Made by a program: the position numbers and the translations under genes. This document shows positions 14,012 to 54,080 of a stretch of DNA of 64,000 nucleotides, piece after piece; positions within the stretch are counted from its first letter, which is position 1, and every line of letters begins with the position of its first letter. The stretch comes from Anthoceros angustus. Lineage: Eukaryota; Plantae; Anthocerotophyta. The stretch is taken from the NCBI GenBank assembly GCA_010909165.1, contig VJWM01000289.1, positions 61,051 through 125,050 on the forward strand, written 5' to 3'. The notes beneath the pieces were generated by a model. It saw only the letters and a program-made list of their open reading frames with translations, was not told the origin of the DNA and searched no databases.

Positions 14012-15126
14012 GTTAAAGTAACCTTGGGCTTCGGGATTCGCATGGAATATGCTGGCTTGAGGTCTAGGGTTCGGGTAAAGTCCTATTATCACCGATATCC
14101 AAGGAAGAAGAAGGCTATAAATGCAATGATAATGTGCTAATTCACCAAGCCATATCCAGGGTTTGAGCTCCATTCCCACCAGAGCAAAAACATCTTGCAA
14201 AAAACACGCACTGGCGAGTGCTGCGAAATTCCTGCTCAACCTAATGGCGGGAAGTCCTGACTATGAGTCATTTCCGCCGGCGTTTCACACCGCGGTCAAG
14301 GAGAGACGCTGTACAAGTGTATGGAAAACCCTTCGTCTCGTATCATGACTCAGAGAGGCAAGCCCGCACCAGAATCGCTGACGCCAGCCATGGCCGCCAC
14401 GCTAAACCCTGGAGATGGAGATGGAGGCAGCTAGTCGTCGAAGTCGCGCCAAGGAGAGTGCCTGCAGCTATCTTAGAAACTCAAGTGCTTTCGTTGTTCC
14501 AGCCAGATTTGGGCTCAAGGGTTGCAAGGATTGATGTTTCTGTGTCCCGCTGCAGTGCCAGGTGCGACTTACCCGACTCCAAGCTGCCTGGTGCAGGCAA
14601 CCCATCAACAAAGTCGTTCCCACGACTCCTAGAAACCTGCACGTGAGCAGATTTCATGTCACTTCGACGACTAACTGCGAGACCTGAGTGCGTCTGGGCT
14701 TAGGGGAGGTGGCTACGCACCCACAGCAAGGCACCACCTCCCCGCCTCACTAGCCGCAGCAGCGTTGCAGCCACAGCAACGCTGATCCAACAAGTTTGGG
14801 GTTTCCAACCTTCCAGGGTCATAGCGCCCGCGTTACAGGTCGGTTGCCGTTGATTCTTATACCAAACTGCTCGCCTTGATGAGGCGAGTCTAATGGTATA
14901 CTGTGTGTCCAATTTGGAGCCCTATCCAGGGACTGATTGCGTTTGAAAGTTTCGAACAGCAGGGTTTTGCTCTTGCTGCATTTGCTTTGATTTTCAATCT
15001 GGCATCACGAGTGAGCGAGGCCGTGTGCTGCAAGCTTTGCATGTGAGCTGGAGTTTTGCTGTGCTGTGTTTCTCAATCCTAGGGCAGACATAGGGGACCG
15101 TAGGTGCTGCCGCATGATCAAAGCAG

Positions 15127-15562
15127 TTGTACTTTCTATTTTGTGCTGGGGAGGAGGGTGCCATGAAGAGGGTGAAGGATACAGGTAGCAATACCTACAC
15201 ATGCTTTGGCCATGGGGGGCAGCGTGGTTTTCTGGATAGGTTCAGAGGAATGTTTGGGAGGGAGCCAACCGTGGATGAGATCAGAGCTGTTGGTACAGTT
15301 CACGGAAATTGGCTGGTGAAGCTGCGAGCGTTTTGGATGAATTCCAAAATCACAAGTCCTGCTTTGGGTCCACAGGTTAACTCACAGGGGGGGATTGACA
15401 CTGCTATTAACGTGTGGAACCTGTTGGTTGAGGCAGGTTACCCAACCGATGAATGCGATGGCAAGGTCATGGATGCCATCATAAAAAAAATGTCTTAGAC
15501 GATGGGTGGATGGTAGGGCACTACCTTCCCAAAGTAAAGGATGCTGAGGAAGTCTCAGCATG
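15127..15562 (+). pseudogene. Possible TnpA-like (Ptta/En/Spm, PF03004-like) fragment inside the CACTA element
   Basis: YTCFGHGGQRGFLDRFRGMFGREPTVDEI resembles the H..G..F....GREP motif of En/Spm TnpA-like proteins as I recall it. Partial copies occur at 32100-32250 and 34050-34234. Confidence 0.4.
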
Positions 15563-21349: not shown

Positions 21350-24300
21350 CGGACTTCCACAGGGGTGAGAAATTAGGTAGGGTTTTGTTTTTGTAGGAGT
21401 AAAGGATAAAATGAGGCGAAAAAGGGAAATAAGCACGGTTAGCACTCGGACGGCACTCGGAGTATACTCCGGACTGAGTGAACGCACTAGGCCTACGATG
21501 GCGTATAGCAACGGATAAGTCCGGACCCACTCCTGTGACCCGGTGATAAGTACGCCGGAAAGTAACTTAGAAGTTGGGCGTAGGGCGGACTAAGCGGCCA
21601 CGTGGGCGACCACAGTGGAGGCGGGCATGCGCCGGTCAGACCGTAACCTTGCGAGGCCGTTATAGCGGTATTCACGCCCCGCGGACTACGGACTTTGGGC
21701 TCTGGCTCCGAGGCGAGAGGACAGCGGCGGCGTAGGGCGAGTAAGCCATGCGGACCTCAGCGATTCTGGACGAGGAAGAGGCGCCCTCAGCCCGGTTACT
21801 CCGGCGTGGTCGCGGAAGAAGGTCATTTCGCTGCGACCTCGAGACAATTCGCGATCTCTTGCGCTCCATGATCCGGCTCTGGCGGTATCTCGTGGGACAC
21901 TCGGGCGTCTTGGCGGCTCACCGTTGAGGTCGGAGGAGGAGAAGGCGAAGGAAGGCGAACGCGTGCCAGCCTCACAAGCGAAGAACCAAGGAGGAGAAGG
22001 CGATGGCACCCAAAAGCCAGCGGAAGTTTGGGAGCCATGGAACCTTGTGGAGCGCAACATTGTGACCGGCGCTATCCGGACTTTGGGCTCTGGCTCCGAG
22101 GCGGGAGTGGCATTTGGATGTGTTCGGATAGTGCGGACATTTGATGTCACTCTGGTCGGGAGTTTGCCCGGAGGGCGGTCAATAAGGAGGTGCGGTCCAA
22201 GAACCTCCGGGAGGACCAAGGCGATGGACCTTGGAGGTCTGAGGCGGCCTACAACCGCCCAAGGAGGAAGAGGGGAGTGCCGAGCCCTCAAGGCGAAGGG
22301 AAGATAGGGCCGACCACAGCGATGCTAAGGCACAGGGCATAGCGGACCCTGTGGTTGGGCGATATCCGACTGTTGGACGGTCGAGTCGAGGCGGCCCGGA
22401 TCATTGTCCATCGAACCTACTCACCAAGGTGGATCACCTTGGTGATAATCTATTGCTGTTCCCGCACGCCGCAGGGGAAGAGGCGAAGGATTATCTTCGC
22501 CGGTTTAGCGAGGCTCATAGCTCGGGGCCAGAAGCCTTCGCCATCAGGCATCCCCATACGATCCATGTATGGGGCATTTGAACTCCTCAAGGAAGGAGCT
22601 TGGCTCGGAAAGGGAGGAGGCCTAGGAAGTGGAGGCGGGCAAGGCGGAGGAGGAGGCGGTCGTCGAAACCAAGCGGACTCGGGAGGAGGAGGCGGAGGAG
22701 GATTCCGGACTCCATACGTGGGGCGGACCCCTCACCACCCGAAGTATGGGAAGCAATTCCGCCTCCCTCCTTGGTGCCCCAACCCAGCGGCCGATCGGCG
22801 AGGCGGCCCGGCCAGCCCCCGGCCATCACTCGGTGAGGCCCAGCCGGACGGAGGCCGAAGGCCAAGACCACGGCTGGCAGCGGCACCCGGTCGGTGCAGT
22901 ACCTCTTCCCTGCGGAGTGGAGCGGAGGAAGCGATGGGAGGCGAGAAAGGGGCCGCCGAGGCGAGAGGACAGCGGCGGCCGCATCGAGCGGTCACATCGC
23001 GGGGAAGGGCAAAAGGCGTGCTCCGGACTCCATCACCTCGAGCCCAGGAGAAGAGGCGGAGAAGGGCTCATGACCAAAAGGGCCAAGGAGGAAGCTCGGC
23101 CTCGGGACCTAAGGGTCTGATTGGGTCGGAGGAGTCCGGACTTACTCGGCTGCGGTATGGAGGTCCTTGGCCGGACCGTGAGATCCGGCTCACTACGGAC
23201 TTTGTGGGAGCCTCACCGGCGGCGGCCGTGGAAGAAACACGGCGGGTCACAGCTACCGTCATGGGTATGCTCACAGGAATGCATGCGGGATGGCGAGACC
23301 CGGTGGAAGCCACCGGGCGCATGGTACTCCTCGGGAGGCGGTTGGAGGAGCCGAGGCGAGAAGGAAGCTCTCGGCGGATTGAGGAAGGAAGCGCGGAGGC
23401 GGAGAGGAGTCTGGTCCATCCGCAGGGCCGGACCAAATTCCTTCAGTGGAGGAGGAAGCGATGGGAGGCGAAAGGCCCAGCGGGCGGAGGACCTCGGGAG
23501 GCGGAGGAAGCGATGGGAGGCGAAGGGCCTTGGGCGCAGCGAGGCAGGCGGGATCGGAGGCGGCCGTGGACGAGCCAAGGCTGGAGGCTCGGTGAAGGTG
23601 GCCAGGAGGCGGAGGCCCGGCGAGGCCGATCGCGATCACTATCGGCGTGATCGGGCCGGTGGAGGAGGCGGAGGCCCACAGCCAATCAGAGGCAGTGGCC
23701 AGACAAGCACGGTCGAGCCGTGAGGAGGCGGAGGCCGGCACGGGAGATTGGGGACCTCGAGTGCAGTAGGAGGTAGAAGGCGGCGGAGGCTGGAGCAACA
23801 AGGACACCTTGGGTTGCAACTCCAAGATGCATCGGGCGGGGGTTCTCAGCGAGAGAATCCAAGACTTGACGAGGTGGGCGCCTCCGGCTCCTTGAAGCGG
23901 AGGAGAATAGGCGGCAGTGCAAGGAGTTCGGCGTCGCAAGGTTGCGAGGATGTGGAGGAAGCCGAGTCGGACGGGGATCTGCCGCTGGAGAAGGAAGTGG
24001 AGGACCTCGGGAAAGAATAGGCGGAGGAGGAGGAGGAGGCCGGGAGGCGGAGGAGGAGGCCGGGAGGCGGAGGCGGCCGTGGACGAGCCTGGAGGCTCGG
24101 TGAAGGTGGCCAGGAGGCGGAGGCCCGGCGAGGCGATCGCGATCACTATCGGCGTGATCGGGCCGGTGGAGGAGGCGGCCGAGGCACCAATCGAAGGCCG
24201 AGCAAGTGGCCGCGGAGCAAGCAGTCGGCCGTGAGGAGGAGGCCGGCACCGGGAGATTGGGGACCTCGAGTGCAGTGCGGGAGGTAGAAGAGGCGGCGGA

Positions 24301-25200
24301 GGCTGGAGGGCCAAGGACACCTTGGGTTGCAACTCCAAGATGCATCGGGCGGCGGGGGTTCTCAGCGAGAATCCAAGACTTGACGAGAGGTGACGCCTCC
24401 AGCTCCGCTTGAGCGGAGGAGAATGGCGGCAGTGCGAGGAGTTCGGCGTCGCAAGGTTGCGAGGATGTGGAGGAAGGAGTCGGACGGGGATCTGCCCGCT
24501 GAGAAGGAAGTGGCGGACCTCGGGAAAGAATAGGCGGAGGAAGAAAGCCTTTGGAGGAGAGGCTACATTGCTCGTCCGGTTGCGAGGCGAAGGGAGCTCG
24601 GCTCCATGGCCCATAGGAGGCGGGCTGGAACACAGCAGGAGGAGGAGAGCGTCGGCGGCGAAGGTTGCAAGTAGCGGAGGCGGCCTTGGCGGCCTCAAGG
24701 AGTCCGCCCGCCTCGGTGGTAAGCTTGGCCGGGCAGGCGGTGGCGGGCGATGCTCGATTCTGGAGCACCTGGAGGAGGAGTGGTGCTCGGGCTCATGTGG
24801 AGGAGGCGATTGACAAGTCGATTCCGACCGCCTACTACCACCTTGAGCTCCTCAAGGCTCTGGAGGTCTGCGCCACCCTAGGCGGGAGGTGGACTTCGAG
24901 AAAGGATGGAGGAGGAGGCGAGAGGAGGAGGCGGAGGCCCAGCGGGCGGAGGAGGAGGAGTCCTAGGGCTTGTTTGGCGGCCAGGCGGGAGGAGGCAGGA
25001 GGAGGAAGGAGTCGCCACAGGAGGTAAGCACTCGGCACCCTCGCATGGAAGGAAGGAGGATCTTGGAGGAAGGGAAAGGTGCAATCGGGCATTCGGGAAC
25101 CAAGGGAGGGTGTGGCGCGACTTTCGCGTGTGACCCGGTAGCGCCACAATCCGTGTGTCGTTGTAGGAAGAAGTCCGTTCCCAAAGGGAATGATAGGCTC
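21350..25200 (+). mobile_element. GC-rich multi-ORF repeat family, plus-strand copy: upstream spacer, MAPK-start ORF (~21980), then a Glu/Arg-rich coiled-coil-like ORF with an internal ~508-bp duplication
   Basis: Homologous segments recur at 36200-36870 (-), 38550-39560 (-), 40590-41250 (-) and 56400-58200 (-). GATCGCGATCACTATCGGCGTG occurs at ~23628 and ~24136. Confidence 0.7.
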
Positions 25201-26816
25201 CGTTTACGCGTTTGGTGATTCTTCCCGTCCTTAGCGCTCGTTCGGTCTCAACACACACATACTCCTAACTACTCTGGCGTTCACCGTCTGAGGCCGGTAT
25301 GGCCAAGCGTTTAAGGACCCGTTCGCGTCCGTATCGTTCATACATCCTCACGCATCGATCCTTTCCTCTCTCCCTCACGCTACACTCTTGATCTTAGAAA
25401 GGCGGGTTCTGTGATCCGGACCTCCTCCGTTCGCGGGCCTCTCCGTCCGGGCTCTACGCCCTCCGGAGTTCCTCCGGCTCACGTTCGATCAGGTCGGTGG
25501 GGCGCGGCTCGGGCGAGCTCAGTCACCCTTCCTGCACACACCACAGCGTTAAGAGTCACGGGACCTTGATCAATCTCCCGGAGGCGTGCACCTTTCGGTG
25601 ACTCGGGACTCACGTTAGCAAGAAGACTCACAAAGGTGCAGCAGCGGCATCAACACCAAGAAAGATGCTTTACTAGGCCTCGGCCCTCTTATCTGCGCCC
25701 AAGGTGGCGTCTTTATTACACCCCTATTACGGTGATAGCCCATTTCGGTATACCTAATCGACGCCTACCATCCTATTTCCCCTATCTCCCATCTCCTTGT
25801 GAAATTTGGGAAGGTCACAGGCCGCCTCGGAATGGGTGGTCAATCCCCGTCTGGCGGTTGTCGCAATCGGATGATCCGTGAGGCGGGGCCCCTCCTCTCC
25901 CGGAATCACAGCCGGGTTGGGCTCTGGTGATCGACAGCCGCGTCATCCTCCTGGCCTCCACAGGTCCTTGGCGGTGGGGCCACCACTATCTGCTCCCCTA
26001 AGCGTAAGTCGAAGGGGCTCCTCCTTCTTGCGGTCCGGTCCTCGAGGTCTGTCTCGACTCCGAACTTGAGTCGGCTTATTCACAGGTCCGGCTAGGTCGT
26101 CGGTCCGGACCTCGGTCGGTTCAGGTCCGGACTTGAGTCCGGACTTATTCCGGACTTGGTCGGACTTATTAGTCCGGACTTGGTCGGCCTCCCTCGGGGT
26201 CCGGACAAAGTCGGACTCACGCCCACCGGGTTTCCTCCCTCAGGACTCCTCCGTGGCTCTCCTCGAAGTCCTTCGCTGTTCCCGATCGCCCGGTGACTCC
26301 CGTTGGCCCCTCCTTCCATGGTGAGGTGCGGGGTGACCTCGATCGCATCCGCGCTCCCTCGTTACGCTCCTCGGTTGCTCCTCTCCGCTCCGTCATCTCA
26401 AGCAGGGGCCACTAGGGTCCTGTCTTGTCCCGTGGCCTTCATCTCCTTGAGCCTTCCGGGGGTCTCAGTTCGGTCGAGGCTTCTCGCCTTGGGAGCTCGG
26501 CGTGGTAATAGGCAAAAATCGACTTGTTGGTGCCTCTTCCACGTGTGCGGGCACCGATACTCCCTCGCCATAAGTGTTAGGCGTCTTTGCCCGGCTTGTT
26601 GGGCCACCTCTCTGCCCGGTTGTGGTGGGCGGGTATCACGCGAGGCTACAAGGCGGCCTCGGTCACCTCCTGCATTGCCTGTTGCTCCACTGCTCCGGCT
26701 CCGTCGTTTCCTCTCCATTGCCGACTTACCGCCATAGGCGTTCCCTTCCGCCTTTCTCGGTGGACCGGCTTCTTTTACTTCCGGTGCTCGCTCCTCCGTT
26801 CATTACGGCCTTTAGC
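25200..26816 (-). mobile_element. Same family: LTR-like segment (25200-25800), TCCGGA array and coiled-coil ORF tail
   Basis: Re-copied at ~27500-28730 and partly at 29565-30180 and 32520-33140. A purine tract GGGAGAGGAGGGG lies on the minus strand near 25890. LTR identity is unproven. Confidence 0.55.
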
Positions 26817-28387
26817 TCATGACTCAGAGAGGCAAGCCCGCACCAGAATCGCTGACGCCAGCCATGGCCGCCACGCTAAACCCTGGAGATGGAGATGGAG
26901 GCAGCTAGTCGTCGAAGTCGCGCCAAGGAGAGTGCCTGCAGCTATCTTAGAAACTCAAGTGCTTTCGTTGTTCCAGCCAGATTTGGGCTCAAGGGTTGCA
27001 AGAGGTAGCAGGCGGCCTTGGCCTCAAGGAGTCCGCCCGCCTCGGTGGTAAGCTTGGCAGGAGGCAGGCGGTGGGCGATCTGCTCGATTCTGGAGCACCT
27101 CTGGAGGAGAGTGCGGTGCTCGGGCTCATGTAGAGGAGGCGATTGACAAGTCGATTCCGACCGCCTACTACCAGCTCCTCAAGGCTCTGGAGGTCTGCGC
27201 CACCCTAGGCGGGAGGTGGACTTCGAGAAAGGATGGAAGGAGGCGAGAGGGCGGACCGGGGCAGCCTGACACAGGAGTCCTAGGGCTTGTTTGATGACAG
27301 CGTGGCGAGGAGGAGGAGGAGGAAGGAGGAGGAAGTCGCTGCAGGAGGTAAGCACTCGGCACCCTCGCATGGAAGGAAGAGGAGGATCTTGGAAGGAAGG
27401 AAAGGTGCAATCTGGGAACCAAGGAGGGTGTGGCGCGACTTTGCGATGCGGCCAGCTGGCGCACAATCCGTGTCGTTGTAGGAAGAAGTCCGTTCCCAAA
27501 GGGAATGATAGGCTCCGTTTACGCGTTTGGTGATTCTCTGTCCTTAGCGCTCGTTCGGTCTCAACACACATACTCCTAACTTCTCAGCGTTCACCGTCTG
27601 AGGCCGGTATGGCCAAGCGTTTAAGGACCCGTTCGTATCGTTCACATCCGTCCCTCACGCATCGATCCTTTCCTCTCCCTCACGCTACACTCTTGGTCTT
27701 AGAAAAAGCGCGGTCTGATCCGGACCTCCTCGTCGTTCCGGCCTCTCGTCCGGGCTCTACACGCCCTCCGGAGTTCCTCCGGCTCACGTTCGATCAGTTC
27801 GGTGCGGGCCGTCCGGGACCGTCACGGTCACCCTTCCTGCACACACCACAGCGTTAAGTCGTCACGGGACCTTGATCAATCTCCCGGGCGCCGTGCACCT
27901 TTCGGTGACTCGGGACTCACGTTAGCAAGAAGACTCACAAGGTGCAGCAGCGGCATCAACACCAAGAAAGATGCTTTACTAGGCGGCCTCGGCCCTCTTA
28001 TCTGCGCCCAAGGTGGCGTCTTTATTACACCCCTATTACGGCGATAGCCATTTCGGTATACCTAATCGGCCGCCTACCATCCTATTTCCCCCCTATCTCC
28101 CCATGTTGTAGGTGGGAAGGTCACAGGCCCGCCTCGGAATGGGTGGTCAATCCCCGTCACAGCGGTTGTGGTGCACCCAATCGGATGATCCGTGGTGGGG
28201 CCCCTCCTCTCCCGGAATCACAGCCGGGTTGGGCTCGTCGGTCGACAACGCCCGTTACCGGCGTCATCCTCCTGGCCTCCCCACAGGTCCGCCGGTGGGG
28301 CCACTATCGGCTCCCCTAAGCGTAAGTCGAAGGGGCTCCTCCTTCTTGCCGCGATCCGGTCCTCGAGGTCTGTCTCGACTCCGAACT

Positions 28388-28726
28388 TGAGTCCGGACTT
28401 ATTCTGGTCCGGACTTGGTCCGGACTTGGTCCGGACTTATTCTGGTCCGGACCTCGTCGGTCGGACTTATTAGTCCGGACTTGGTCCGGACTTATTAGTC
28501 CGGACTTGAGGTCGGACTTATTCTGGTCCGGACTTGGTCCGGCCTCCTCTGGGGTCCGGACAAAGTCGGACTTATTCTGGTCCGGACTTGAGTCCGGACT
28601 TGAGTCCGGACTTATTAGTCCGGACTTGAGTCCGGACTTATTCTGGTCCGGACTTGAGTCCGGACTTATTCTGGTCCGGACTTGAGTCCGGACTTGGTCC
28701 GGACTTGGTCCGGACAAAGTCGGACT
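28388..28726. repeat. Array of about 20 GTCCGGAC palindromes with short spacers (TTG, TTGA, TTATTCTG, TTATTA). Shorter versions at 26091-26215 and 32346-32535.
   Basis: Directly visible. Confidence 0.95.
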
Positions 28727-29564
28727 TCCTCCGGCTCATACAGCAGCGTTGCAGCCACAGCAACGCTGATCCAACAAGTTTGGGGTTTCCAACCTTCCAG
28801 GGTCATAGCGCCCGCGTTACAGGTCGGTTGCCGTTGATTCTTATACCAAACTGCTCGCCTTGATGAGGCGAGTCTAATGGTATACTGTGTGTCCAATTTG
28901 GAGCCCTATCCAGGGACTGATTGCGTTTGAAAGTTTCGAACAGCAGGGTTTTGCTCTTGCTGCATTTGCTTTGATTTTCAATCTGGCATCGCGAGTGAGC
29001 GAGGCCGTGCTGCAAGCTTTGCATGTGAGCTGGAGTTTTGCTGTGCTGTGTTTCTCAATCCTAGGGCAGACATAGGGGACCGTAGGTGCTGCATGATCAA
29101 AGCAGTTGAACTTTCTATTTTGTGCTCCATTCCCACCAGAGCAAAAACATCATAAAAAACACGCACTGGCGAGTGCTGCGAAATTCCTGCTCAACCTAAT
29201 GGCGGGAAGTCCTGACTATGAGTCATTTCCGCCGGCGTTTCACACCGCGGTCAAGGGAGAGACGCTGTACAAGTGTATGGAAAACCCTTCGTCTCGTATC
29301 ATGACTCAGAGAGGCAAGCCCGCACCAGAATCGCTGACGCCAGCCATGGCCGCCACGCTAAACCCTGGAGATGGAGATGGAGGCAGCTAGTCGTCGAAGT
29401 CGCGCCAAGGAGAGTGCCTGCAGCTATCTTAGAAACTCAAGTGCTTTCGTTGTTCCAGCCAGATTTGGGCTCAAGGGTTGCAAGGATTGATGTTTCTGTG
29501 TCCCGCTGCAGTGCCAGGTGCGACTTACCCGACTCCAAGCTGCCTGGTGCAGGCAGCCCATCAA

Positions 29565-32500
29565 CAAAGTCGGACTCCCACCGGGTTTCCTCCCTCAGGA
29601 CTCCTCCGTGGCTCTCCTCGAAGTCCTCCTTCCCGATCGCCCGGTGACTCCTTCGTTGGCCCCTCCTTCCATGGTGAGGTGCGGGTGCTTACCTCGATCG
29701 CATCCGCTCCCTCGTTACGCTCCTCCGGTTGCTCCTCTCCGCTCCGTCATCTCAGGCCACTAGGGTCCTGTCATCCCGTGGCCTTCATCTCCTTGAGCCT
29801 TCCGGTCCGTCGGTTTCGGCCGTCGAGGCTCTGCGCCGGGAGCTCGGCGTGGTAATAGGCAAAGTCAGATCGACTTGTTGAATTGCCTCTTCCACGTGTG
29901 CGGGCACCGATACTCCCTCGCCATAAGTGTTAGGGGGCGTCTTTGCCCGGCTTGTTGGGCCACCTCTGCCCGGTTGTGGTGGGCGGGGTATCACGCGAGG
30001 CTACAAGGCGGCCTCGGTCACCTCCTGCATTGCAGCTGTTGCTCCACTGCTCCGGCTCCGTCGTTTCCTCTCCATTGACTTACCCGCCATGGCGGCGTTC
30101 CCTTCCGCCTTTCTCGGTGGACCGGGCTTCTTTTACTTCCGGTGCTCGCTCCTCCGTTCATTACGGCCTTTAGCTCATGACTCCCTCTCCGGTGATCCGT
30201 CTCACTCCGGACTTCCTCCGGCTCATACATGGCAGCAGCGTCCAACTCCTTGGATAGTCGCGATTTTCCTCCGTCTTGAGACGGGGCACTCTATTTCGTG
30301 CTCGTGGATTCTCGTTGAGAATCACTGCTGCTCGACGCATCTTGGGTTGTAGCTCCGGCGTGTCCTTCTCCTCCATCTCCTCCTTCTACCTCCTGCACTG
30401 GCTCGGAGATCTCCTATCTCCCGAGTCGGCCTCCATCTCCTCCTTGGCCTTGCACGCTCCATAGCCCTTTGTCGGCCGAGTACTGCTGTGACTCTCTCCA
30501 CGGTTCGATCTGCGTCTGGTGATCCGGTCGCTCTTTGTGACTTGCTCGCCGCCTTTACAGGCCTCGCCCACTTGGCGCTGGCCGGGCCTCGCCAGTCCCG
30601 AGCTCTCTTGTGCCGGGCCTCTTAGCCTCTGCTGCGCTTCCCCCCTTCTGCAAGGTCCTCCGCCCGCTTGGCCTCTGAGCTTGCTTGACGCCGGTGAAGA
30701 ACCTTGATCTGGCCCCGCCGGGCCTCGCGCTCCGCCACCGGCGTTTCCCTTCCTCGATCGGCGAGGACTCCGCCTTTGCCCTGGCGCCTTCACTTGCTCT
30801 TGGGTTCCACCATCCTCCTCGGGTGGCCTCCACTTCACAGGTCTTCTCTGTACCACGAGACCCCAAAGCATTCCGTCCATGGCGGACTCGCCGTGTTTCT
30901 TCCACGGCCGCAGTGAGGCCCCACAAAGTCCGTAGTGGAGCCGGCATTTCTCGTCCAGGACCTCCATACCCTTGATCCGGGAGTAAGTCGGGTGGGTTCT
31001 CGGACCTAATCGGGACCCTCGGGTCACAGTGGTGGTCAGTCTCACCCTCTTGGCCCTCTTGGCCTCTAACTCCTTTGTGCCCTCTTTCTCACAGGGCTCG
31101 GAGGAGGTGGCTACGCACCCACAGCAAGGCACCACCTCCCCGCCTCACTAGCCGCAGCAGCGTCCAACTCCTTGGATAGTCGCGATTTTCCTCCGTCTTG
31201 AGGCCGGAGGGCACTCTATTTCGTGCTCGAGTCGTGGATTCTCTCGTTGAGAATCACTGCTGCTCAGCGCATCTTGGGTTGTAGCTCCGGCGTGTCCTTC
31301 TCCTCCATCTGCTGCGCCTCTCCTCTCTACTGCTGTACTCGGGAATCTCTATCTCCCGTCTTGGCCTCCATCTCCTCCTTGGTGGCCCTTGCTCCATAGC
31401 CTTTGTCGGCCTTGAGTTAGCCTCGGTGCTGTGACTCTCTCCACGGTTCGATCACGTCATGGTGATCCGGTCGCTCTTTCGCTTGACTCGCCGCCGCCTT
31501 TACAGGCCTCGCCCACTTGGCGCTCTGGCCGCCTCCGGTCGAGCTCTCTGCTTGTGCCGGGCCTCTTAGCCTCTGCTGCGCTTCCCCCCTTCTTTGCAAG
31601 GTCCTCCGCCCGCTTGGCCTCCAGCTTGCCGATTCGGTGAGAACCTTAACCCGATCTGTGAACCGCCGGGCCTCGCGCTCCGGCGTTTCCCTTCCTCGAT
31701 CGGCGAGGACTCCGCCTTTCCTTTGCCCCAGGCGCCTTCACTTGCTCTTGGGTTCCACCATCCTCCTCGGGTGGCCTCCACTTCACAGGTCTTCTCTGTA
31801 CCAGAGACCCCAAAGCATTCCGTCCATGGCGGTAGCAGGACTTCGCCGTGTTTCTTCCACGGGCTGTGAGGCCCCACAAAGTCCGTAGTGGGGCCGGCAT
31901 TTCTCGGTCCATAGGACCTCCATACCTTGATCCGGAGTAAGTCGGGTGGGTTCTCGGACCTAATCGGGACCCTCGGGTCACAGTGGTGGTCAGTCTCACC
32001 CTCTTGGCCCTCTTGGCCTCTAACTCCTTTGTGCCCTCTTTCTCACAGGGCTCGGAGGAGGTGAGGGGTCGGGAGCAAGCTCTTTTGCCCCTTCACAGGG
32101 GGGCAGGTTTTCTGGATAGGTTCAGAGGAAAGTTTGGGAGGAGCCAACCGTGGATGAGATCAGAGCTGTTGGTACAGTTCACGGAAATTGGCTGGTGAAG
32201 CTGCGAGCTTTTGGATGAATTCCAAAATCACAAGTCCTGCTTTGGGTCCACAGGTGTCCGCCGGTGGGGCCACCACTACTCCCCTAAGCGTAAGTCGAAG
32301 GGGCTCCTCCTTCTTGCCATGACCTCGAGGTCTGTCTCGACTCCGAACTTGAGTCGGACTTATTCTGGTCGGCCCGGCTGGGTCCGACCTTGTCTGGGGT
32401 CCGGACCTCGAGGTCCGGACTTGAGTCGGACTTGGTCCGGACTTATTCTGGTCCGGACTTGAGGTCGGACTTATTAGTCCGGACTTGAGGTCCGGACCTC

Positions 32501-34055
32501 GAGGTCCGGACCTCGAGGTCGGACAAAGTCGGACTCCCACCGGGTTTCCTCCCTCAGGACTCCTCCGTGGCTCTCCTCGAAGTCCTCCTTCCCGATCGCC
32601 CGGTGACTCCTTCGTTGGCCCCTCCTTCCATGGTGAGGTGCGGGTGCTTACCTCGATCGCATCCGCTCCCTCGTTACGCTCCTCCGGTTGCTCCTCTCCG
32701 CTCCGTCATCTCAGGCCACTAGGGTCCTGTCTCCCGTGGCCTTCATCTCCTTGAGCCTTCCGGTCCGTCGGTTTCGGCCGTCGAGGCTCTGCGCCGGGAG
32801 CTCGGCGTGGTAATAGGCAAAGTCAGATCGACTTGTTGAATTGCCTCTTCCACGTGTGCGGGCACCGATACTCCCTCGCCATAAGTGTTAGGGGGCGTCT
32901 TTGCCCGGCTTGTTGGGCCACCTCTGCCCGGTTGTGGTGGGCGGGGTATCACGCGAGGCTACAAGGCGGCCTCGGTCACCTCCTGCATTGCAGCTGTTGC
33001 TCCACTGCTCCGGCTCCGTCGTTTCCTCTCCATTGACTTACCCGCCATGGCGGCGTTCCCTTCCGCCTTTCTCGGTGGACCGGGCTTCTTTTACTTCCGG
33101 TGCTCGCTCCTCCGTTCATTACGGCCTTTAGCTCATGACTCCCTCTCCGGTGATCCGTCTCACTCCGGACTTCCTCCGGCTCATACATGGCAGCAGCGTC
33201 CAACTCCTTGGATAGTCGCGATTTTCCTCCGTCTTGAGACGGGGCACTCTATTTCGTGCTCGTGGATTCTCGTTGAGAATCACTGCTGCTCGACGCATCT
33301 TGGGTTGTAGCTCCGGCGTGTCCTTCTCCTCCATCTCCTCCTTCTACCTCCTGCACTGGCTCGGAGATCTCCTATCTCCCGAGTCGGCCTCCATCTCCTC
33401 CTTGGCCTTGCACGCTCCATAGCCCTTTGTCGGCCGAGTACTGCTGTGACTCTCTCCACGGTTCGATCTGCGTCTGGTGATCCGGTCGCTCTTTGTGACT
33501 TGCTCGCCGCCTTTACAGGCCTCGCCCACTTGGCGCTGGCCGGGCCTCGCCAGTCCCGAGCTCTCTGCTTGTGCCGGGCCTCTTAGCCTCTGCTGCGCTT
33601 CCCCCCTTCTGCAAGGTCCTCCGCCCGCTTGGCCTCTGAGCTTGCTTGACGCCGGTGAAGAACCTTGATCTGGCCCCGCCGGGCCTCGCGCTCCGCCACC
33701 GGCGTTTCCCTTCCTCGATCGGCGAGGACTCCGCCTTTGCCCTGGCGCCTTCACTTGCTCTTGGGTTCCACCATCCTCCTCGGGTGGCCTCCACTTCACA
33801 GGTCTTCTCTGTACCACGAGACCCCAAAGCATTCCGTCCATGGCGGACTCGCCGTGTTTCTTCCACGGCCGCAGTGAGGCCCCACAAAGTCCGTAGTGGA
33901 GCCGGCATTTCTCGTCCAGGACCTCCATACCCTTGATCGGAGTAAGTCGGGTGGGTTCTCGGACCTAATCGGGACCCTCGGGTCACAGTGGTGGTCAGTC
34001 TCACCCTCTTGGCCCTCTTGGCCTCTAACTCCTTTGTGCCCTCTTTCTCACAGGG
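29565..34055. repeat. Near-identical direct repeat of ~1.5 kb at a 2958-bp offset (29565-31100 vs 32523-34055)
   Basis: Identical ORF-track entries are shifted by 2958 (29785/32743, 29927/32885, 30170/33128). Confidence 0.9.
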
Positions 34056-35096
34056 GGATTGACACTGCTATTAACGTGTGGAACCTGTTGGCTGAGGCAG
34101 GTTACCCAACCGATGAATGCGATGGCAAGGTCATGGATGCCATCATGAAAAAAAATGTCTTAGACGATGGGTGGATGGTAGGGCACTACCTTCCCCGCAA
34201 AGTGGCCAAGGATGCTGAGGAAGTCTCAGCATGATTAAGGTTAGAGGCTGATGCTGTTGCTTTCATCATTTCCATGTTCCATGATTTGTCTGAAATTTCT
34301 TGTTCCAGGACCTCATATTTTGGGTGCCATTGCTTTCTCCTCCTCTCCCCTCCTCCTCCTCCTCCTCCCCACTTATGAAATTGACAACACCGGTTATGAA
34401 TCTGCATACACTTTGCAGCCAATCTTTTGCTACGTTCCATTTACTACAGGAGTCCACTACTAAACATTTCACTACGAACTTTTACTATAGAATTTTACGA
34501 GCTTTTACTGTAGAATTTTTTCTACGGACTTTTACCATAGAATTTTACAACATACTTTTACTATAGAATTTTACTCGTATGTTAACCACGCTGTTTACTA
34601 CAGGATTTTACTACGAATATTTACTATAAAATATTACAGGTCTTTTCTACAACGGAGAGATTTACAACGGAATCCAGCGGAATTTACAACGGAGCCGGAT
34701 TACTTAACCGTGATTAATTAACTATGGTCAACATATGATTAACCAAACCCACTCATTTAACTGCAGTTAATATACTGTAGTTAGCTAATCTCGGTTAACT
34801 AACCATTATTTTTAACCACGATTAGGCCAAGAGTAAAGTCCGTGGTTGTTCGTTGTAGTAAATACCGTGGGTAAAAGGTTTGGTAATTTAAAGAGTAACT
34901 AGTATATGGTAGACTTCATTAACATACTCACATACTGTGATAGAACATACGTAGTATAGCCATCATATACGTATCGGACTTTTACCACCGGACACTAACG
35001 CTATGTGATTACATCGACGCTTTACCACGGGAGTAGTAAACCCGCTGTAAAGTCCAGAGTAATGTGGGTGGTAAAGTACACTTTTCCTAGTAGTGT
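34047..35096. mobile_element. Second copy of the right ~1.1 kb of the CACTA element. A third right terminus lies at ~36866-37333.
   Basis: Matches 15381-16658 and ends in ACTTTTCCTAGTAGTG. Both copies are followed by the same flank TTCGGCACAGTGACC. No left TIR is present for these copies. Confidence 0.85.
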
Positions 35097-37333
35097 TCGG
35101 CACAGTGACCGAAGATCTTAAATGCAGTGGTTCGTGGGCTACGGCGTAGAAGGATGTGGGAGTTCACCGAGGTGTGATGCGGTCGGCCGGGTTACGGCCT
35201 TTAGCTCATGACTCCCTCTCAGCGGTCGGATACCTCCGTCTCGGGACTTCCTCCGGCTCATAGCACAGCAGCGTCCAACTCCTTGGATAGTCGCGATTTT
35301 CCTCCGTCTTGAGGCCGGAGGGCACTCTATTTCGTGCTCGAGTCGTGGATTCTCTCGTTGAGAATCACTGCTGCTCAGCGCATCTTGGGTTGTAGCTCCG
35401 GCGTGTCCTTCTCCTCCATCTGCTGCGCCTCTCCTCTCTACTGCTGTACTCGGGAATCTCTATCTCCCGTCTTGGCCTCCATCTCCTCCTTGGTGGCCCT
35501 TGCTCCATAGCCTTTGTCGGCCTTGAGTTAGCCTCGGTGCTGTGACTCTCTCCACGGTTCGATCACGTCATGGTGATCCGGTCGCTCTTTCGCTTGACTC
35601 GCCGCCGCCTTTACAGGCCTCGCCCACTTGGCGCTCTGGCCGCCTCCGGTCGAGCTCTCTGCTTGTGCCGGGCCTCTTAGCCTCTGCTGCGCTTCCCCTT
35701 CTTTGCAAGGTCCTCCGCCCGCTTGGCCTCCAGCTTGCCGATTCGGTGAGAACCTTAACCCGATCTGTGAACCGCCGGGCCTCGCGCTCCGGCGTTTCCC
35801 TTCCTCGATCGGCGAGGACTCCGCCTTTCCTTTGCCCCAGGCGCCTTCACTTGCTCTTGGGTTCCACCATCCTCCTCGGGTGGCCTCCACTTCACAGGTC
35901 TTCTCTCTGTACCACGAGACCCCAAAGCATTCCGTCCATGTAGCAGGACTCGCCGTGTTTCTTCCACGGCCGCGGTGATGAGGCCCCACAAAGTCCGTAG
36001 TGGGGCCGGCATTTCTCGTCCAGGACCTCCATCTGATCGGAGTAAGTCGGGTGGGTTCTCGGACCTAATCGGGACCCTCGGGTCACAGTGGTGGTCAGGA
36101 GTCTCACCCTCTTGGCCCTCTTGGCCTCTAACTCCTTTGTGCCCTCTTTCTCACAGGGCTCGGAGGAGGTGAGGGGTCAGGGAGCAAGCTCTTTTGCCCC
36201 TTCACAGTCGGGGGCAGGGGCCGGCTCGTGGGGCTGCGCGGTGACCTCCTGCTCCTTGGGCCACGTCCCTTCGCCCTCCTTCGCCTCTTGACCTCTTGCC
36301 ACTCAGGTGGGCGGGGTAAGTCTGGCACCTGAGGTCTTTGCGTTGGTAAGCGGCACCGTCTTCGCCTCTTGACTCCCGTTGAGTTCGTCGGGGCTCGGCG
36401 GCCGTCGTGGTTGTTAACTGCAGCCGGTCAGCCGCGCCGACGACTCCCTCACTGTCTTGCTCGGAGGGCACCAAAAGGAGGAAGGGAATCGCCTCCCAAA
36501 CTTCCACAGGTGGTGAGGGGTTCGCTCGGCGTATGAGTCAGGAATCCTCGGTCGTCCTCCTCCGAGTCGCTTGGTCTTGAAGGGCGACCCCCACCTCAGG
36601 CGCCCTTGCACGCTCTACTTGGCGGGGCCTCCGGCCCGGGCGCCCGTTCAAGCTCTCCCTCCTTGAGAGCTCGAAATGTCCCCATACATGAATCGGTATG
36701 GGGTCGGCCGATGGCGAGGCTTCTCGCTCCTTAGCTTGCGTGCCTCTGGCCAGGCAGGCGAAGATAATCCTTCCCAGTCGCTCTCTTCCCCATTGGGCGC
36801 ATGCGAGAATACCAGAGTTATCACCAAGGTGATCCACCTTGGTGGCGAGTTCAATGGACAATGATCCGGGCTACAGGGTCTTTTCTACAACGGAGAGATT
36901 TACAACGGAATCCAGCGGAATTTACAACGGAGCCGGATTACTTAACCGTGATTAATTAACTATGGTCAACATATGATTAACCAAACCCACTCATTTAACT
37001 GCAGTTAATATACTGTAGTTAGCTAATCTCGGTTAACTAACCATTATTTTTAACCACGATTAGGCCAAGAGTAAAGTCCGTGGTTGTTCGTTGTAGTAAA
37101 TACCGTGGGTAAAAGGTTTGGTAATTTAAAGAGTAACTAGTATATGGTAGACTTCATTAACATACTCACATACTGTGATAGAACATACGTAGTATAGCCA
37201 TCATATACGTATCGGACTTTTACCACCGGACACTAACGCTATGTGATTACATCGACGCTTTACCACGGGAGTAGTAAACCCGCTGTAAAGTCCAGAGTAA
37301 TGTGGGTGGTAAAGTACACTTTTCCTAGTAGTG

Positions 37334-38550
37334 TTCGGCACAGTGACCGAAGATCTTAAATGCAGTGGTTCGTGGGCTACGGCGTAGAAGGATGTGGGAG
37401 TTCACCGAGGTGTGATGCGGTCGGCCGGGTTACGGCCTACATTGTCGACACAATGGCCCCTCACCTATATACTACCGTAGCACCATTCGAGAAGTGGGGA
37501 ATCGATTGTAATCAAACCTACCGCCGCAATGGAAAAGGAAACAAAGACATTTTGGTGGCTACGGATTATTGTATCAAGATGGTGGAGGCCAAGTACCGAG
37601 GAAGGATCCGCCGTGGCAAAGTTTATTCGAGAACATCATAACGAGGTACGGGTGTCCTTTAGAGTTGGTCACGACGAGGGACACATTTCCTCAACTCGCT
37701 GCTGAGTCCCTAACCACCTACTTCAACATTCGGCACCGAAAGACGACCCCCTACAACCCCAAGGCGAACGGATTGAGAAGACGAACGGATTGCCAGGCAC
37801 AATCCTCACCAAGGTAGAACACACACATGTATGGATCGATGCGCATTCAAGACTGGGCTTACAGGACCGCGGAGAAGGTAACCACCAAGAAGACCCCTTA
37901 TTATCTGACGTATGGAATGTCGCCTGTGATGCCCGTGGAATTTGAAGTACCTACCTACAGGATCATGGAGGATGAACGCATGACTGTAGAAGATAGTCAG
38001 TTAGCTAGGCTAGAATCTTTCATGGAGCAGGAGGAACGTAGGGAAGATGCTTTAGAGGAGACTCAGCGAATTCAGGAGCTCAGAAAGGACCGGCATGATG
38101 GAAAAGTGAGGAAGCAGGAGGCTATCACAGCCGGGGATTTAGTTCTTCTCTACGATAGTTTGGTGACTCCTGGAAAGCTTAGGTGAGATGGATGGGACCT
38201 TATGAGGTAGTAGCAAGATATGAGAATGGATCCGCAACCCCAAAAGAGGCGGAGAAGTGTTGCCCACTGTGAGTAAATGGGTGGAAGGTTAAGAAGTACC
38301 TTCACTGAGAATTCGCTGTTTGTAGGACGCAAACAAGTGAGGAGGGGAGTATGTGGAACGCAAAAGTTTGGGCAACTACCCCAAAAGAGCCGTAAGGCAA
38401 ACAAGTTTGATTTTCTTTGGCTAAAAATGATTGAAGAGGAGCATGTGAAATTTTCTCTGAAGTCAAGTTGTAGGATATTGTTAGGAAGTCGAAGGAAGAT
38501 ATCCCAGACAAAGAACGGGTCAAACGACCCCAAAGCGGCGTAATGGCACC
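37334..38550 (+). mobile_element. Tat/Athila-type gypsy integrase, PPT and LTR start. Partly duplicated at 39562-40210 and 35097-35200.
   Basis: PFEKWGID, MVEAK, ENIITRYGCPLELV, HRKTTPYNPKANG, KKTPYYLTYGMSPVMPVEFE, VNGWKVKKY, then GAGGAGGGGAG-TA-TGT at ~38340-38355. Confidence 0.85.
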
Positions 38551-41500
38551 AAAAGGAGGAAGGGAATCGCCTCCCAAACTTCCACAGGTGGTGAGGGGTT
38601 CGCTCAGGGCGTATGGAGTCAGGAATCCTCGGTCGTCCTCCTCCGAGTCGCTTGGTCTTGAAGGGCGACCCCCACCTCAGGCGCCCTTGCACGCTCTACT
38701 TACGGGGCCTCCGGCCCTTGGGCGCCCGTTCAAGCTCTCCCTCCTTGAGAGCTCGAAATGTCCCCATACATGAATCGGTATGGGGTCGGCCGATAAGCGA
38801 GGCTTCGCTCCTTAGCTTGCGTGCCTCTGGCCCAGGCGAAGATAATCCTTCCCAGTCGCTCTCTTCCCATGGGCGCATGCGAGAATACCAGCGGGTTATC
38901 ACCAAGGTGATCCACCTTGGTGGCGAGTTCAATGGACAATGATCGGGCTACCGCCCTTACTCGGATCCGGATCGGATATCAACCATCCGTTGGTTGTCAT
39001 TGCGTTCGAGCCTCGGCATCGTGGCGGGGCCCTATCTTCCCCGCCGCCTTAAGGGGCTCGGCACCCTTCTTCCTCCTTGGGCGGTTGTAGGCCATCCTCG
39101 GGACCTCAAGGTCCATCGCCTCGGGTCCTCCGGAGGTTCTTGGATCGGACCTCCTTGTTGATCGCCATCTTGCAAACTCCGGACTAGAGTAGCGTTGTCA
39201 AAGGTCGAGACCTGGAACCATCCTGCCTCCCCACCAATTCCCACTTCCTCCGGCCCGGGCCCGAAGTCCGGATAGCGCGGGTCACAATGTTGCGCTCCAC
39301 GGTCCATGGCTCCCAGGTTCCGTCGGCTTTTGGGTGCCATTGCTTTCTCCTCCTCTTGTTCTTTGTAGGCTGCTGGCGGTCGGCGCGATGTTCCTCCTTC
39401 GCGCGTTGCTCCAACCTTGGGTGCGCGCTCTAAAGTGGGCGCCCAAAAGATGCGCGGAGCGGATTGCGGGCGCGGGCTATGAGGGGTTATGCGGAGGCTG
39501 CGCGGTGACCTCCCTCCCTCCTTGGCGCTTGTGGAAATGGCTGGGGCGGAAGGCGCCTCACTAAGAAGACCCCTTATTATCTCGACGATGGAATGTCGCC
39601 TGTGATGCCCGTGGAATTTGAAGTACCTACCATGTGATCATGGAGGATGAACGCTCAGAGAAGATAGTCGCTTAGCTAGGCTAGAATCTTTCATGGAGTG
39701 AGGAACGAGGGAAGATGCTTTAGAGGAGACTCAATTCGTGAGCTCGAAAGGACCGGCATGATGGAAAAGTGAGGAAGGTGGAGGCTATCACCGGGATTTA
39801 GTTCTTCTCTACGATAGTTTGGTGACTCCTGGAAAGCTTAGGTGAGATGGATGGGACCTTATGAGGTAGTAGCAAGATATGAGAATGGATCCGCAACCCC
39901 AAAAGAGGCGGAGAAGTGTTGCCCACTGTGAGTAAATGGGTGGAAGGTTAAGAAGTACCTTCACTGAGAATTCGCTGTTTGTAGGACGCAAACAAGTGAG
40001 GAGGGGAGTATGTGGAACGCAAAAGTTTGGGCAACTACCCCAAAAGAGCCGTAAGGCAAACAAGTTTGATTTTCTTTGGCTAAAAATGATTGAAGAGGAG
40101 CATGTGAAATTTTCTCTGAAGTCAAGTTGTAGGATATTGTTAGGAAGTCGAAGGAAGATATCCCAGACAAAGAACGGGTCAAACGACCCCAAAGCGGCGT
40201 AATGGCACCAAAGGGCGGTAGGTCAGACTACCATCGAGGTCGCCACACACGGTAGGTCGAGAAAAGGAGCATCACGGTAAGTCGCCATCACCGCTGACCC
40301 AAGGGATCTCGCCAGAAAAGCAATGAATATAGGGGATATCCACTATATATGCTCATCAATAGGGGAATAAATATATAGGTTAATTAGGGTAGCGGCTAGA
40401 ATAGAAAAGATAGGCGCTTTAGATAGGATTAGGATTTTGTAAATGATGAACCAAATCTAGGGTTGTGCAGCAGTGGCACATCCAAAGAAGGCAAAGTGCG
40501 CTTGGGGCAAATAACTTCCTCTTCGAGAGGCGCCTCACTACAAAGAAGACTGGAGCCGGAGCGTAAGGAAGCGCGAGAAAAGGAAGCTGCCATTGCTTTC
40601 TCCTCCTCTTGTTCTTTGTAGGCTGCTGGCGGTCGGCGCGATGTTCCTCCTTCGCGCGTTGCTCCAACCTTGGGTGCGCGCTCTAAAGTGGGCGCCCAAA
40701 AGATGCGCGGAGCGGATTGCGGGCGCGGGCTATGAGGGTTATGCGGAGGCCGCGGCCTCTCCCCTTGGCGCTTGTGGAAATGGCTGGGGCGGAAGGCGCC
40801 TCTTCGTTGTCGTAGCGCGAGTGCATGCGCCTCGACCCTCGCGCTTACCTGCTTACGCGCCGCGCCGGCGTGAATACCCTCTGCGGCCTGCAGCATTCAG
40901 TCTGACCTCTGCATGCGACCTCCACTCGGGGCCGTCCGTGGCGCCGCCTCGTCATCCTCACGCCTCGCTCCTAGGTTACTTTCACTGGCGTACTTATCCT
41001 GTTTGACACAGGTGGGTTGGACTTATCCGTTACTCCGGCGTAGTCGGAGCTTGCCATAGTGGTGCGGGGTCCGTTGTTCACTCCAGTCGGAGTATACTCG
41101 AGCCTCGTCGGCGCTACCCCAATTTATTCCTCCTTTTCCTTATTTATCCTTCAATCCTAAAAAGCGAAACCCTACTTATTTCTTAACTCCCGAGAAGTGC
41201 AGCCCACATACTCCCTTCTCATCATTGGCGTCTCGCCAACACTAAGCATATACTTCTTCACCCGTTCAGTGGGCAGACTCTCCATCTAGGCCGTGGGCCG
41301 GACCCGTGAACTGTGAAGGAGCGCGGTGCCGGAATTTGTCAAGGGCGGAGCCAAGTCGAGGAGCCTAGCGTGTGAGATTGAAGGGATTGAAGACGAGGAG
41401 GAGCAAATTGAACGGAGAAAGAGGAAACGCCACCCGCCGCCTTGCCCCGGAGGAGAAATCGCGAGGGGAAATTAGCCAGCCTAGAAGGCCTGCCGTGGCT

Positions 41501-53900: not shown

Positions 53901-54080
53901 TATATATATATTTATATATACATAAGTAAACGTAGCTGTTGTTAGCAGCCTAAAGTTTAGGATTGTGAATAGTCATGACTCTTGACATTTTTGTATATAA
54001 GACATATCAGTGCTTAATTTAAGAATCTTTCTTTGTTTTGGCAATTGAGTGAGCATGCGTTGCTCTCAAAAACTTCAACA
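47914..54080 (+). mobile_element. Full-length Ty1/copia retrotransposon with frameshifted ORFs
   Basis: LTRs 47914-48116 and 53872-54080 (TG..CA). PBS TGGTATCAAAGC at 48117. PPT AAGGGGGCG at 53863. TSD GGTGG/GGTAG. Zn knuckle CKWCGVQGHWEREC, protease WYIDSGATSH, LWHARLGH, RT EPRTYTEA..KNDTWEL and LYVDDA, RH STEAEY..CDNISTI..HARTKHIEVQHHFIR. Confidence 0.95.

Follow-up and report, generated by a model that had tools for sequence, protein, structure and literature searches.

Some 10-14 kb of the Anthoceros angustus DNA analysed here, a stretch of 64,000 nucleotides called the window below, consists of stitched copies of neighbouring repeats, all on the same strand. Exact direct copies of other window sequence (matches of at least 20 bp) make up 91% of the bases in 26817-36218, against 5-9% elsewhere, and most pieces follow one another at short words common to both parents, usually of exactly 9 bases. 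Real serial template switching in the plant is put forward with a confidence that comes close to even, and the analysis leans slightly towards it over a software artefact. The sequence-only reading had considered an artefact at least as likely as template switching; its memoryless k-mer and strand-symmetric graph forms are not supported.

If the joins are real, the genome preserves a dense series of template switches that sharply required 9 bases and used one strand only; it would illustrate how a burst can give rise to satellites and gene/transposon chimeras, and would be a natural system in which to study what determines the shortest pairing that lets DNA synthesis restart. If they were made by software, a sizeable share of the repeat fraction of the assembly is inflated and scrambled, and conclusions on repeats, tandem gene arrays and 'broken' genes need re-checking.

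Sources and arrangement of the pieces

Every piece of 26817-36218 has a relative within the window, the sources being two copies of a CACTA element, a probably non-coding repeat called BC (with two versions, alpha and beta) and a short piece, G. It had been claimed earlier that every donor lies inside the window, and relatives do exist there for all pieces, but several are matched at only 86-95% (26994-28572; 29564-30183 against 26205-26825; 34347-34638). Features are given below on the forward strand.

CACTA element no. 1 (12450-16658, 4.2 kb) has terminal inverted repeats beginning CACTACTAGGAAAAGT at 12450 on the forward and 16658 on the reverse strand, with 25 of the first 26 bases matching, and the 3-bp duplication AGA at both flanks. 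Its CACTA-starting inverted ends and 3-bp target-site duplication are those of the CACTA (En/Spm) group; no transposase domain was found, the tested ORFs in or adjoining it (11550-12026, 12173-12475, 14263-14643 and 15127-15495) having no Pfam match, and the element is taken as non-autonomous. Most of the patchwork's CACTA pieces have their near-identical relative in part 'M' of this element (14162-16658).

The host sequence on the left is B1 (24663-26825), the left part of BC in version alpha, which is left at 26825. A 186-bp CACTA island follows (26817-27002), with TCATGACTC and GGTTGCAAG at its ends and 100% identity to 14343-14528 as well as to 29299-29484. The second copy of the left part of B, B2 (26994-28727), carries an expanded GTCCGGACTT-type array at 28380-28727; its first part, 26994-28572, is 86% identical to 24663-26217. 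After it stands a fragment from the start of C (28721-28749), the exact 22-bp core of which (28721-28742) recurs at 30208-30229 and 33166-33187, and which joins CACTA at CAGCAGCGT. Two CACTA pieces come next, 28741-29126 (14757-15147, 98.2% identity) and 29119-29572 (14162-14616, 98.7%), the latter a backward step on the CACTA template. The tail of B with C1 in version beta (29564-31109) is entered at ACAAAGTCG; its portion 29564-30183 is 90% identical to 26205-26825. It completes the BC unit begun at 26994-28727, which is interrupted by an 837-bp insertion (28727-29563) with a 13-bp duplication on its flanks.

Between C1 and C2 lies a 61-bp CACTA island (31103-31163, 100% identical to 14705-14765). 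C2, of version alpha (31154-32107), is exact over its first 433 bp when set against 35266-36207, the whole comparison giving 0-2 substitutions and 13-15 small indels. A CACTA piece (32106-32255; 15226-15377, 98% identity) leads to B from the equivalent of 25957 with C3 (32247-34055), joined at TCCACAGGT and CTCACAGGG, which interrupts CACTA as a 1791-bp insertion after position 15377, with 3 bp lost before CACTA resumes at 15381. CACTA then continues (34047-34326, equal to 15381-15655) up to a 29-bp island from G (34318-34346, from 39328-39356 downstream), entered at TTTTGGGTG. The 3' part of the second CACTA copy (34339-35200) ends at 35095 and brings 105 bp of its own flank; it is only 88-95% like element no. 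1, its flank is unlike that of no. 1, and 34639-35200 equals 36877-37438 exactly (562 bp). Finally BC alpha is re-entered at TTACGGCCT with the last 23 bp of B and C4 (35192-36218), by which an 8.4-kb insertion (26826-35191) is closed.

Blocks have three different end points and start within repeats, at the equivalents of 24663, 25957, 26205, 26803 and 30232. Two pieces stand upstream of their relatives: the G island of its donor (39328), and the 28721-28742 fragment of its full copies. Long stretches of 562, 835 and 433 bp are reused exactly, beside copies that differ by clustered small indels.

The sequence-only reading had also described shuffled CACTA, gypsy and accessory-ORF modules. Only the CACTA part of this can be kept, the others forming no part of the patchwork and no shuffled module having a Pfam match: a Pfam search of 20 ORFs returned only retrotransposon domains (integrase and gag), all outside the patchwork. 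An Rfam search gave no match, and a metagenome scan with a 34-mer adjoining the 26817 join was empty. Word searches of a large protein collection with the ORF that spans the 26817 and 26994 joins, and with the longest ORF of C, found no match, the window's own ORFs being likewise unmatched there, so that these searches carry no independent evidence; part C is probably non-coding.

Junction words, strand and template fidelity

The junction words cited in the sequence-only reading (12 of 12) are all present in place. Shared length is 7-10 bases in 15 of 17 joins, being exactly 9 in ten joins, 10 in one and 7-8 in four; three right-hand joins share only 1-6. Nine perfect bases are shared at 26817 (TCATGACTC), 26994 (GGTTGCAAG), 28741 (CAGCAGCGT), 29564 (ACAAAGTCG), 34047 (CTCACAGGG), 34318 (TTTTGGGTG), 35192 (TTACGGCCT) and 38545 (GGCACCAAA), and ten at 31154 (GCAGCAGCGT). 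The word earlier placed at 32248 is a real one, but it had been given one base short: the full 9-base word, TCCACAGGT, stands at 32247. Eight perfect bases are shared at 34339, about 8 with one mismatch at 29119, about 8-9 at 32098-32107, and 7 perfect bases (GGAGGTG) at 31103, or 10 with one mismatch. For a join placed at random, nine or more common bases would have a probability of about 4e-5. In three-way views of mosaic, left parent and right parent, near-perfect identity to the left parent runs up to the word and to the right parent from the word on. The junction flanks are clean. Each junction is unique, and none was found in two diverged copies within the window, so they give no proof of age.

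The suspiciously uniform word length that had been remarked on proved to be a real and sharp threshold. Among available shared words, 6 of 25 9-mers were used against 1 of 76 8-mers (p=8e-4), and words of 10-12 nt, seven of which were available, were not preferred over 9-mers, even though annealing energetics would favour longer words. Opposite-strand words were used in none of 38 available cases; all joins are same-strand (p=0.007; about 2e-5 for 14 joins). The long pieces keep to one template over 1.5 kb and the two BC versions are unmixed: 32523-34055 differs from 29564-31096 by 0 substitutions and 3 indels, and agrees with it at 91 of the 94 sites separating the versions, across 39 stretches of at least 9 identical bases.

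Insertions return to the host at -460 to +23 bases from where it was left. In the outer 8.4-kb block, B is abandoned at 26825 and resumed at the equivalent of 26803, so that the last 23 bp of B1 are repeated exactly at 35192-35214 as a 23-bp duplication. In five of six cases the CACTA template is resumed further along, by +4 to +461 nt (p about 1e-3, computed by hand), as would be expected of a stalled fork with single-stranded template directly in front of it.

Differences between copies are mostly small indels and less often substitutions (116 substitutions to 185 indels, against 328 to 163 in control repeats); the predominance of indels depends in part on alignment settings, as MAFFT turns some garbled patches into substitutions, but the contrast with the control repeats persists. 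Two pairs of the same sequence differ very unequally, by 1 and 15 events. These differences, like the digital gate, the single strand and the uniqueness of the junctions, weigh against switching in the plant. The small indels are enriched at CG, CCG and CWG; enrichment at such methylation contexts implies native, unamplified DNA and therefore speaks against amplification chimeras.

Proposed template switching and the explanations that compete with it

Under serial template switching, 26826-35191, and more loosely the sequence up to about 40.8 kb, would be newly copied DNA from a replication-type process in the plant, comprising one event or a few, with 14 or more switches of the growing strand among a few nearby templates: two CACTA copies, the two BC versions and G. 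At each switch the last 9 or so copied bases would pair with the new template. Only one template strand would be available, as would fit a fork that has stalled or reversed and exposes single-stranded template, or else synthesis of the rolling-circle or break-induced kind. The agent that we infer is a plant polymerase acting in a single burst; one speculative candidate for the gate is a footprint of about 8-9 bp, of a polymerase or of the recombinase type. With a little less confidence than is given to switching at this locus, it is proposed that this plant possesses a pathway which restarts synthesis on a nearby single-stranded template only where at least 9 bases are paired, and which may act genome-wide, building scrambled repeat arrays and transposon/gene patchworks from a few kilobases of local sequence. 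Such strand-restricted, length-gated template switching would be previously undescribed.

The closest known relatives are MMBIR, FoSTeS and chromoanasynthesis, with which the patchwork has in common switches in series, templated insertions that range from tens of bases up to a few kilobases, and shared bases at each join; as in MMBIR and FoSTeS, a template is left and then regained near the same spot with small duplications or deletions. Junction microhomology beyond chance and templated inserts with serial switches are both present, and the islands of 22-186 bp look like the templated insertions that break-induced replication makes. Published human MMBIR, however, has a median overlap of 3 bp, draws its donors from many loci and in both orientations, and shows fold-backs (PMC13065848). 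In the window pairing is gated at 9 bases, no donor is more than about 12 kb away and only one strand is used; overlaps of a few bases in either orientation are not what is seen. Replication slippage normally acts over tens to hundreds of bases; it is likewise confined to the same strand and yields direct duplications and deletions with small indels alongside, but jumps of 1-12 kb and interleaved unrelated repeats are unlike it. Strand invasion would not be confined to one strand. A gate based on length is also known from microhomology sampling by Rad51/RecA filaments, which reject duplexes without an 8-nt match and gain stability in 3-nt steps (PMC10903458; PMC6719624); that gate is 8 nt in vitro, and here 8-nt words are almost unused (1/76).

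The most serious competitor, which is regarded as a good possibility while staying slightly behind the switching reading, is an error in the making of an error-prone assembly, probably from nanopore data: a correction, consensus, patching or merging step would have joined real local pieces at exact same-strand matches of 9 bases or more, and the reuse of pieces would have inflated the locus. Its best argument is the sharp threshold at 9, together with the flat use of longer words and the restriction to one strand. It would also account for the closed local vocabulary (the 91% of 26817-36218 in exact direct matches), the uniqueness of all junctions, the exact reuse of 562, 835 and 433 bp beside copies with clustered small indels, and the collinear stepping along CACTA, as an anchor chain would give; an overlap- or anchor-type join with a minimum match of 9 would fit the hard minimum, the single strand and the faithful pieces alike. 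Against it, re-entry upstream of the leaving point, with duplications of 23 and 13 bp, breaks simple anchor collinearity, four joins have only 7-8 perfect bases, and the junction flanks are clean. To our knowledge no assembler or polisher joins at 9 bases, long-read assembler steps included. The k-mer or graph-consensus artefact that had been suggested earlier resembles the patchwork in its fixed minimum overlap and closed vocabulary, but a de Bruijn graph is strand-symmetric and would mix near-identical copies at each shared stretch, and neither was found. A memoryless k-mer or de Bruijn walk is ruled out by the one-template fidelity (91/94 sites kept across the 39 switching opportunities), a strand-symmetric graph by the 0/38 opposite-strand words, and overlaps range from 1 to 10 bases instead of having the same length (k-1) throughout.

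It is very unlikely that the sequence was generated by a computer or a model that copied earlier context and jumped at repeated words, as the sequence-only reading had allowed. Same-strand copying, the closed vocabulary, small slips in place of substitutions and the word-length threshold would all suit such an origin, but left-to-right copying is contradicted by the 22-bp fragment of C (28721) and the 29-bp fragment of G (34318), which precede their only full copies. The BC versions are not mixed, and a genuine CACTA element, complete with inverted ends and its 3-bp duplication, is present in the window, as are integrase and gag domains of retrotransposons. Chimeras made in the laboratory, by PCR or whole-genome amplification ahead of sequencing, appear a shade less probable still. 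Such reactions do yield polymerase jumps at short overlaps between nearby sequences; in phi29 chimeras the overlap peaks at 6 nt (mostly 5-8), the distance at about 250-300 nt, and the inverted type is treated as most numerous (PMC4595205), whereas the joins here are all direct, with a mode of 9 nt and distances of up to 12 kb. For a single consensus to contain fourteen jumps, many identical molecules would be required, and the methylation contexts at which indels are enriched speak for native DNA.

Chance similarity and the ordinary nesting of transposons, scarcely credible in spite of the CACTA and other repeats present and of 23-bp and 13-bp duplications that superficially look like target-site duplications, are refuted by the junction anatomy, as pieces begin and end at internal repeat points that differ each time, one of them with 105 bp of flank beyond the CACTA end, and a 9-base overlap at a random join has a probability of only about 4e-5. 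The blocks are not bounded by element termini with a target duplication foreign to the element, and the junction words are not target-site duplications because they belong to both parents. A host CACTA with nested insertions is ruled out by the same material: the CACTA-like part comes from two element copies and includes 105 bp of flank beyond the end, therefore it is copied DNA and not the product of transposition.

The right-hand part, 36467-40802

Looser joins are found to the right. E1 (36467-36874) matches 38545-38951 at 95% and is joined at only 4 shared bases (36871) to the 3' fragment of CACTA copy no. 2 with its flank (36871-37438, element end at 37333). F1 (37883-38553) matches 39559-40212 at 95% and is joined at GGCACCAAA to E2, which runs on into G1 (38545-39559) and has an old inverted relative at 21981-22779 (74%). 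F2 (39559-40212) shares only 1 base with G1 at their join; AGGCGCCTC, which had been read as microhomology at 39551, does not hold as such, since the right parent (37883) differs upstream of it and only that single base is common to both parents. G2 (40588-40802) matches 39335-39559, and its left join, at 40588, shares about 6 bases.

Shared words at the joins

In the patchwork between 26817 and about 40.8 kb, each join, or switch point between two parents, was examined by printing the mosaic beside both parents, the left one continued beyond the join and the right one extended back in front of it. In these three-way views one parent is near-perfectly identical at every join until the shared word and then collapses immediately, the other parent being its mirror image. 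Self-comparison of the window tiles 24.6-40.8 kb by same-strand matches to other window parts, and adjoining matches overlap at their ends by about 9 bases. All twelve junction words cited in the sequence-only reading are present where it had placed them. Perfect sharing amounts to 9 bases at 26817, 26994, 28741, 29564, 32247, 34047, 34318, 35192 and 38545, to 10 at 31154, to 8-9 at 32098-32107 (small indels in the parents), to 8 at 29119 (with one mismatch) and 34339 (a CT-rich run), to 7 at 31103 (10 with one mismatch), and to about 6, 4 and 1 at 40588, 36871 and 39559, respectively. That such overlaps exceed chance is borne out, as at least 9 shared bases are expected at a random join with a probability of about 4e-5. 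The word AGGCGCCTC at 39551, proposed as a further microhomology, recurs in the left parent family only and therefore does not constitute one.

Within 26817-36218, 91% of bases belong to stretches of 20 bp or more that recur exactly and in direct orientation somewhere else in the window; the window parts on either side reach 5-9%, and the retrotransposon interior about 1%. A 44-bp exact match (40332-40375 = 44240-44283), whose surroundings (40332-40593 vs 44240-44527) are only 76% similar, may be a further small templated island beyond the range reported.

Maximal shared words were counted between CACTA part 14162-16763 (which overruns the element, ending at 16658, by 105 bp) and the alpha version of BC, a repeat of about 3.1 kb with left part B and right part C. 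On the same strand, joins use one of 284 available 7-nt words, one of 76 8-nt words, six of 25 9-nt words and none of seven 10-12-nt words. Use differs between 9 and 8 nt (Fisher p=8e-4) and between at least 9 and at most 8 nt (p=2e-9), the difference between 9 and at least 10 nt being not significant; the gate thus opens abruptly at 9, with no further rise in use for longer words, unlike simple annealing energetics, which would prefer the longest ones. Opposite-strand words of at least 9 nt in this comparison were never used (0/38, p=0.007), and the probability that all 14 joins are same-strand is about 2e-5.

Source repeats and nested architecture

The first CACTA copy (12450-16658) is a complete, bona fide non-autonomous element with a 26-bp terminal inverted repeat (25/26 bases match) and a 3-bp target duplication, AGA; no transposase was found in it. 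Subterminal repeats of 13 bp (ATTTTACTACAGA-type) lie at 16013-16193, and the element's 3' 2.5 kb form the source part M (14162-16658). The element end is found again at 35095 and 37333, followed by a flank unlike that of copy 1 and identical at both sites (562 bp exact, including 105 bp past the element end), which is a second CACTA copy. Patchwork pieces equivalent to 14162-15655 are 98-100% identical to copy 1, whereas the rest of the CACTA material matches copy 2 at 100% but copy 1 at only 88-95%; the material therefore has two sources.

An array of GTCCGGACTT-type units lies within BC, which gave no Pfam or database match (protein look-up included). The alpha version of BC is represented by B1 (24663-26825), C2 (31154-32107) and C4 (in 35192-36218), its beta version by 29564-31109 (with C1) and 32523-34055 (with C3). 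The right-hand pieces E (36467-36874), F (37883-38553, 39559-40212) and G (40588-40802), with E and G also in 38545-39559, are additional repeats without annotation. The TCCGG core of the GTCCGGACTT arrays within B is shared by a 19-bp tandem array of TAGGTTAGTCCGGTTACGG at 7763-8441 (about 39 copies, unusually high indel content of 20% by TRF). Both strands of a 64% GC block at 22355-24768 carry long ORFs (431 and 475 aa, no Pfam hit). The block also has an internal 513-bp tandem duplication (23533-24028/24046-24541; 13 substitutions, 27 indels), and E and part of C have old relatives there in inverted orientation (21981-22779 and 23136-23264, respectively).

Taken as insertions, the blocks of the patchwork nest within one another. 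The path departs from B1 at 26825 and rejoins BC alpha at the equivalent of 26803; since 26803-26825 and 35192-35214 are 23 identical bases, 26826-35191 is a single 8.4-kb block within a BC unit. Within this block, an insert of 837 bp, bordered by a 13-bp duplication, splits a BC beta unit (26994-28727 plus 29564-31109) in two. CACTA pieces follow in the order 14343-14528, 14757-15147, 14162-14616, 14705-14765, 15226-15377, 15381-15655 and 15878 to the element end. The return to the CACTA template after an excursion lies +4 to +461 nt ahead of the exit in 5/6 cases (p about 1e-3 under random re-entry, calculated by hand from match coordinates), most clearly where exit at 15377 is followed by 1791 bp of BC and re-entry at 15381. 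The islands at 28721 and 34318 are only 22-29 bp long, and the sole full copies of each are downstream.

Copy differences and origin of the patchwork

Long pieces are faithful to one template: of the 94 events by which 29564-31096 departs from BC alpha, 32523-34055 shares 91, over an interval with 39 runs of at least 9 identical bases. The k-mer artefact suggested earlier, taken as a 9-mer or de Bruijn walk without memory, should have changed template about half the time (0.5^39) and is ruled out by this fidelity.

Substitutions are rare between the members of near-identical pairs, most of whose differences are indels of 1-8 bp (29564-31096 vs 32523-34055: 0 substitutions, 3 indels; C2 vs C4: 0-2 and 13-15, all within the last 490 bp). 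About 12 small C2/C4 indels cluster in 140 bp at 31793-31932, the preceding 433 bp being exact; C1 and C3 show one event only in the same sequence. Overall, patchwork copies show 116 substitutions and 185 indels vs 328 and 163 in control repeats from elsewhere in the window (p=1e-14), a split partly set by alignment settings, with many differences being short garbled patches. Controls included the inverted pairs 47000-47466/62704-63173 and 54182-54899/61385-62032 (81-84% identity, 7-15 kb apart, diverged mainly by substitutions). Indel counts moderately exceed expectation at CG (101 vs 78), CCG/CGG (65 vs 42) and CWG (33 vs 21); if these indels are nanopore-type errors at methylated DNA, the sequenced DNA is probably native.

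Two explanations survive. The one tentatively favoured, held with slightly under even confidence, is that serial template switching really took place in a burst, on single-stranded local templates and with a requirement for at least 9 paired bases. It is preferred because of the insertion geometry, the returns that step forward on a single template, the shortness of the templated islands and the presence of material from both CACTA copies and from flank, because the DNA is probably native, and because, to our knowledge, no assembler step joins at 9 bases. This last point weighs against an overlap- or anchor-type software join, a possibility of real weight albeit doubtful, which would account for the digital threshold, the single-strand joins, the uniqueness of each junction and the exact reuse of long stretches. 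Independent copies of the joins were sought, protein look-ups of junction ORFs being blank and a metagenome scan empty. Generated sequence is quite unlikely; laboratory amplification chimeras are highly improbable, the probably native DNA arguing against them, and ordinary nesting is practically negligible, with a small share of the probability left unassigned.

No full fit is offered by three known processes. Human microhomology-mediated break-induced replication gives insertions of 55-3916 bp with a median junction overlap of 3 bp, from many donor loci in both orientations (PMC13065848). Phi29 amplification chimeras peak at 6 nt of overlap and a distance of 250-300 nt, the inverted type being treated as most numerous (PMC4595205). 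Recombinase filaments reject duplexes without 8 nt of match, stability rising by 3-nt steps (PMC10903458; PMC6719624); this gate is similar in size, yet 8 not 9, and unlike the patchwork it has no strand restriction.

Retrotransposon remains in the window

Gypsy and accessory-ORF modules had been named among the shuffled parts, which is not supported; for gypsy, this follows from the retrotransposon (gag plus integrase, 17.3-20.3 kb) lying outside the patchwork. Its remains, with fragmented ORFs, adjoin the CACTA end on the right and occupy 17333-20338 on the + strand; a gag zinc knuckle is weakly recognised at 17333-18004, and an integrase core lies at 19937-20335 (E=8e-11). A copia-type gag/Pol beta-barrel ORF (49754-50422) lies between two direct repeats, each about 200 bp long (47922-48121 and 53879-54084; 95%, 6 kb apart), and 47922-54084 is possibly a copia element in decay whose LTRs are short. 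The word TCATGACTC, which also serves as junction word at 26817, is present in both repeats.
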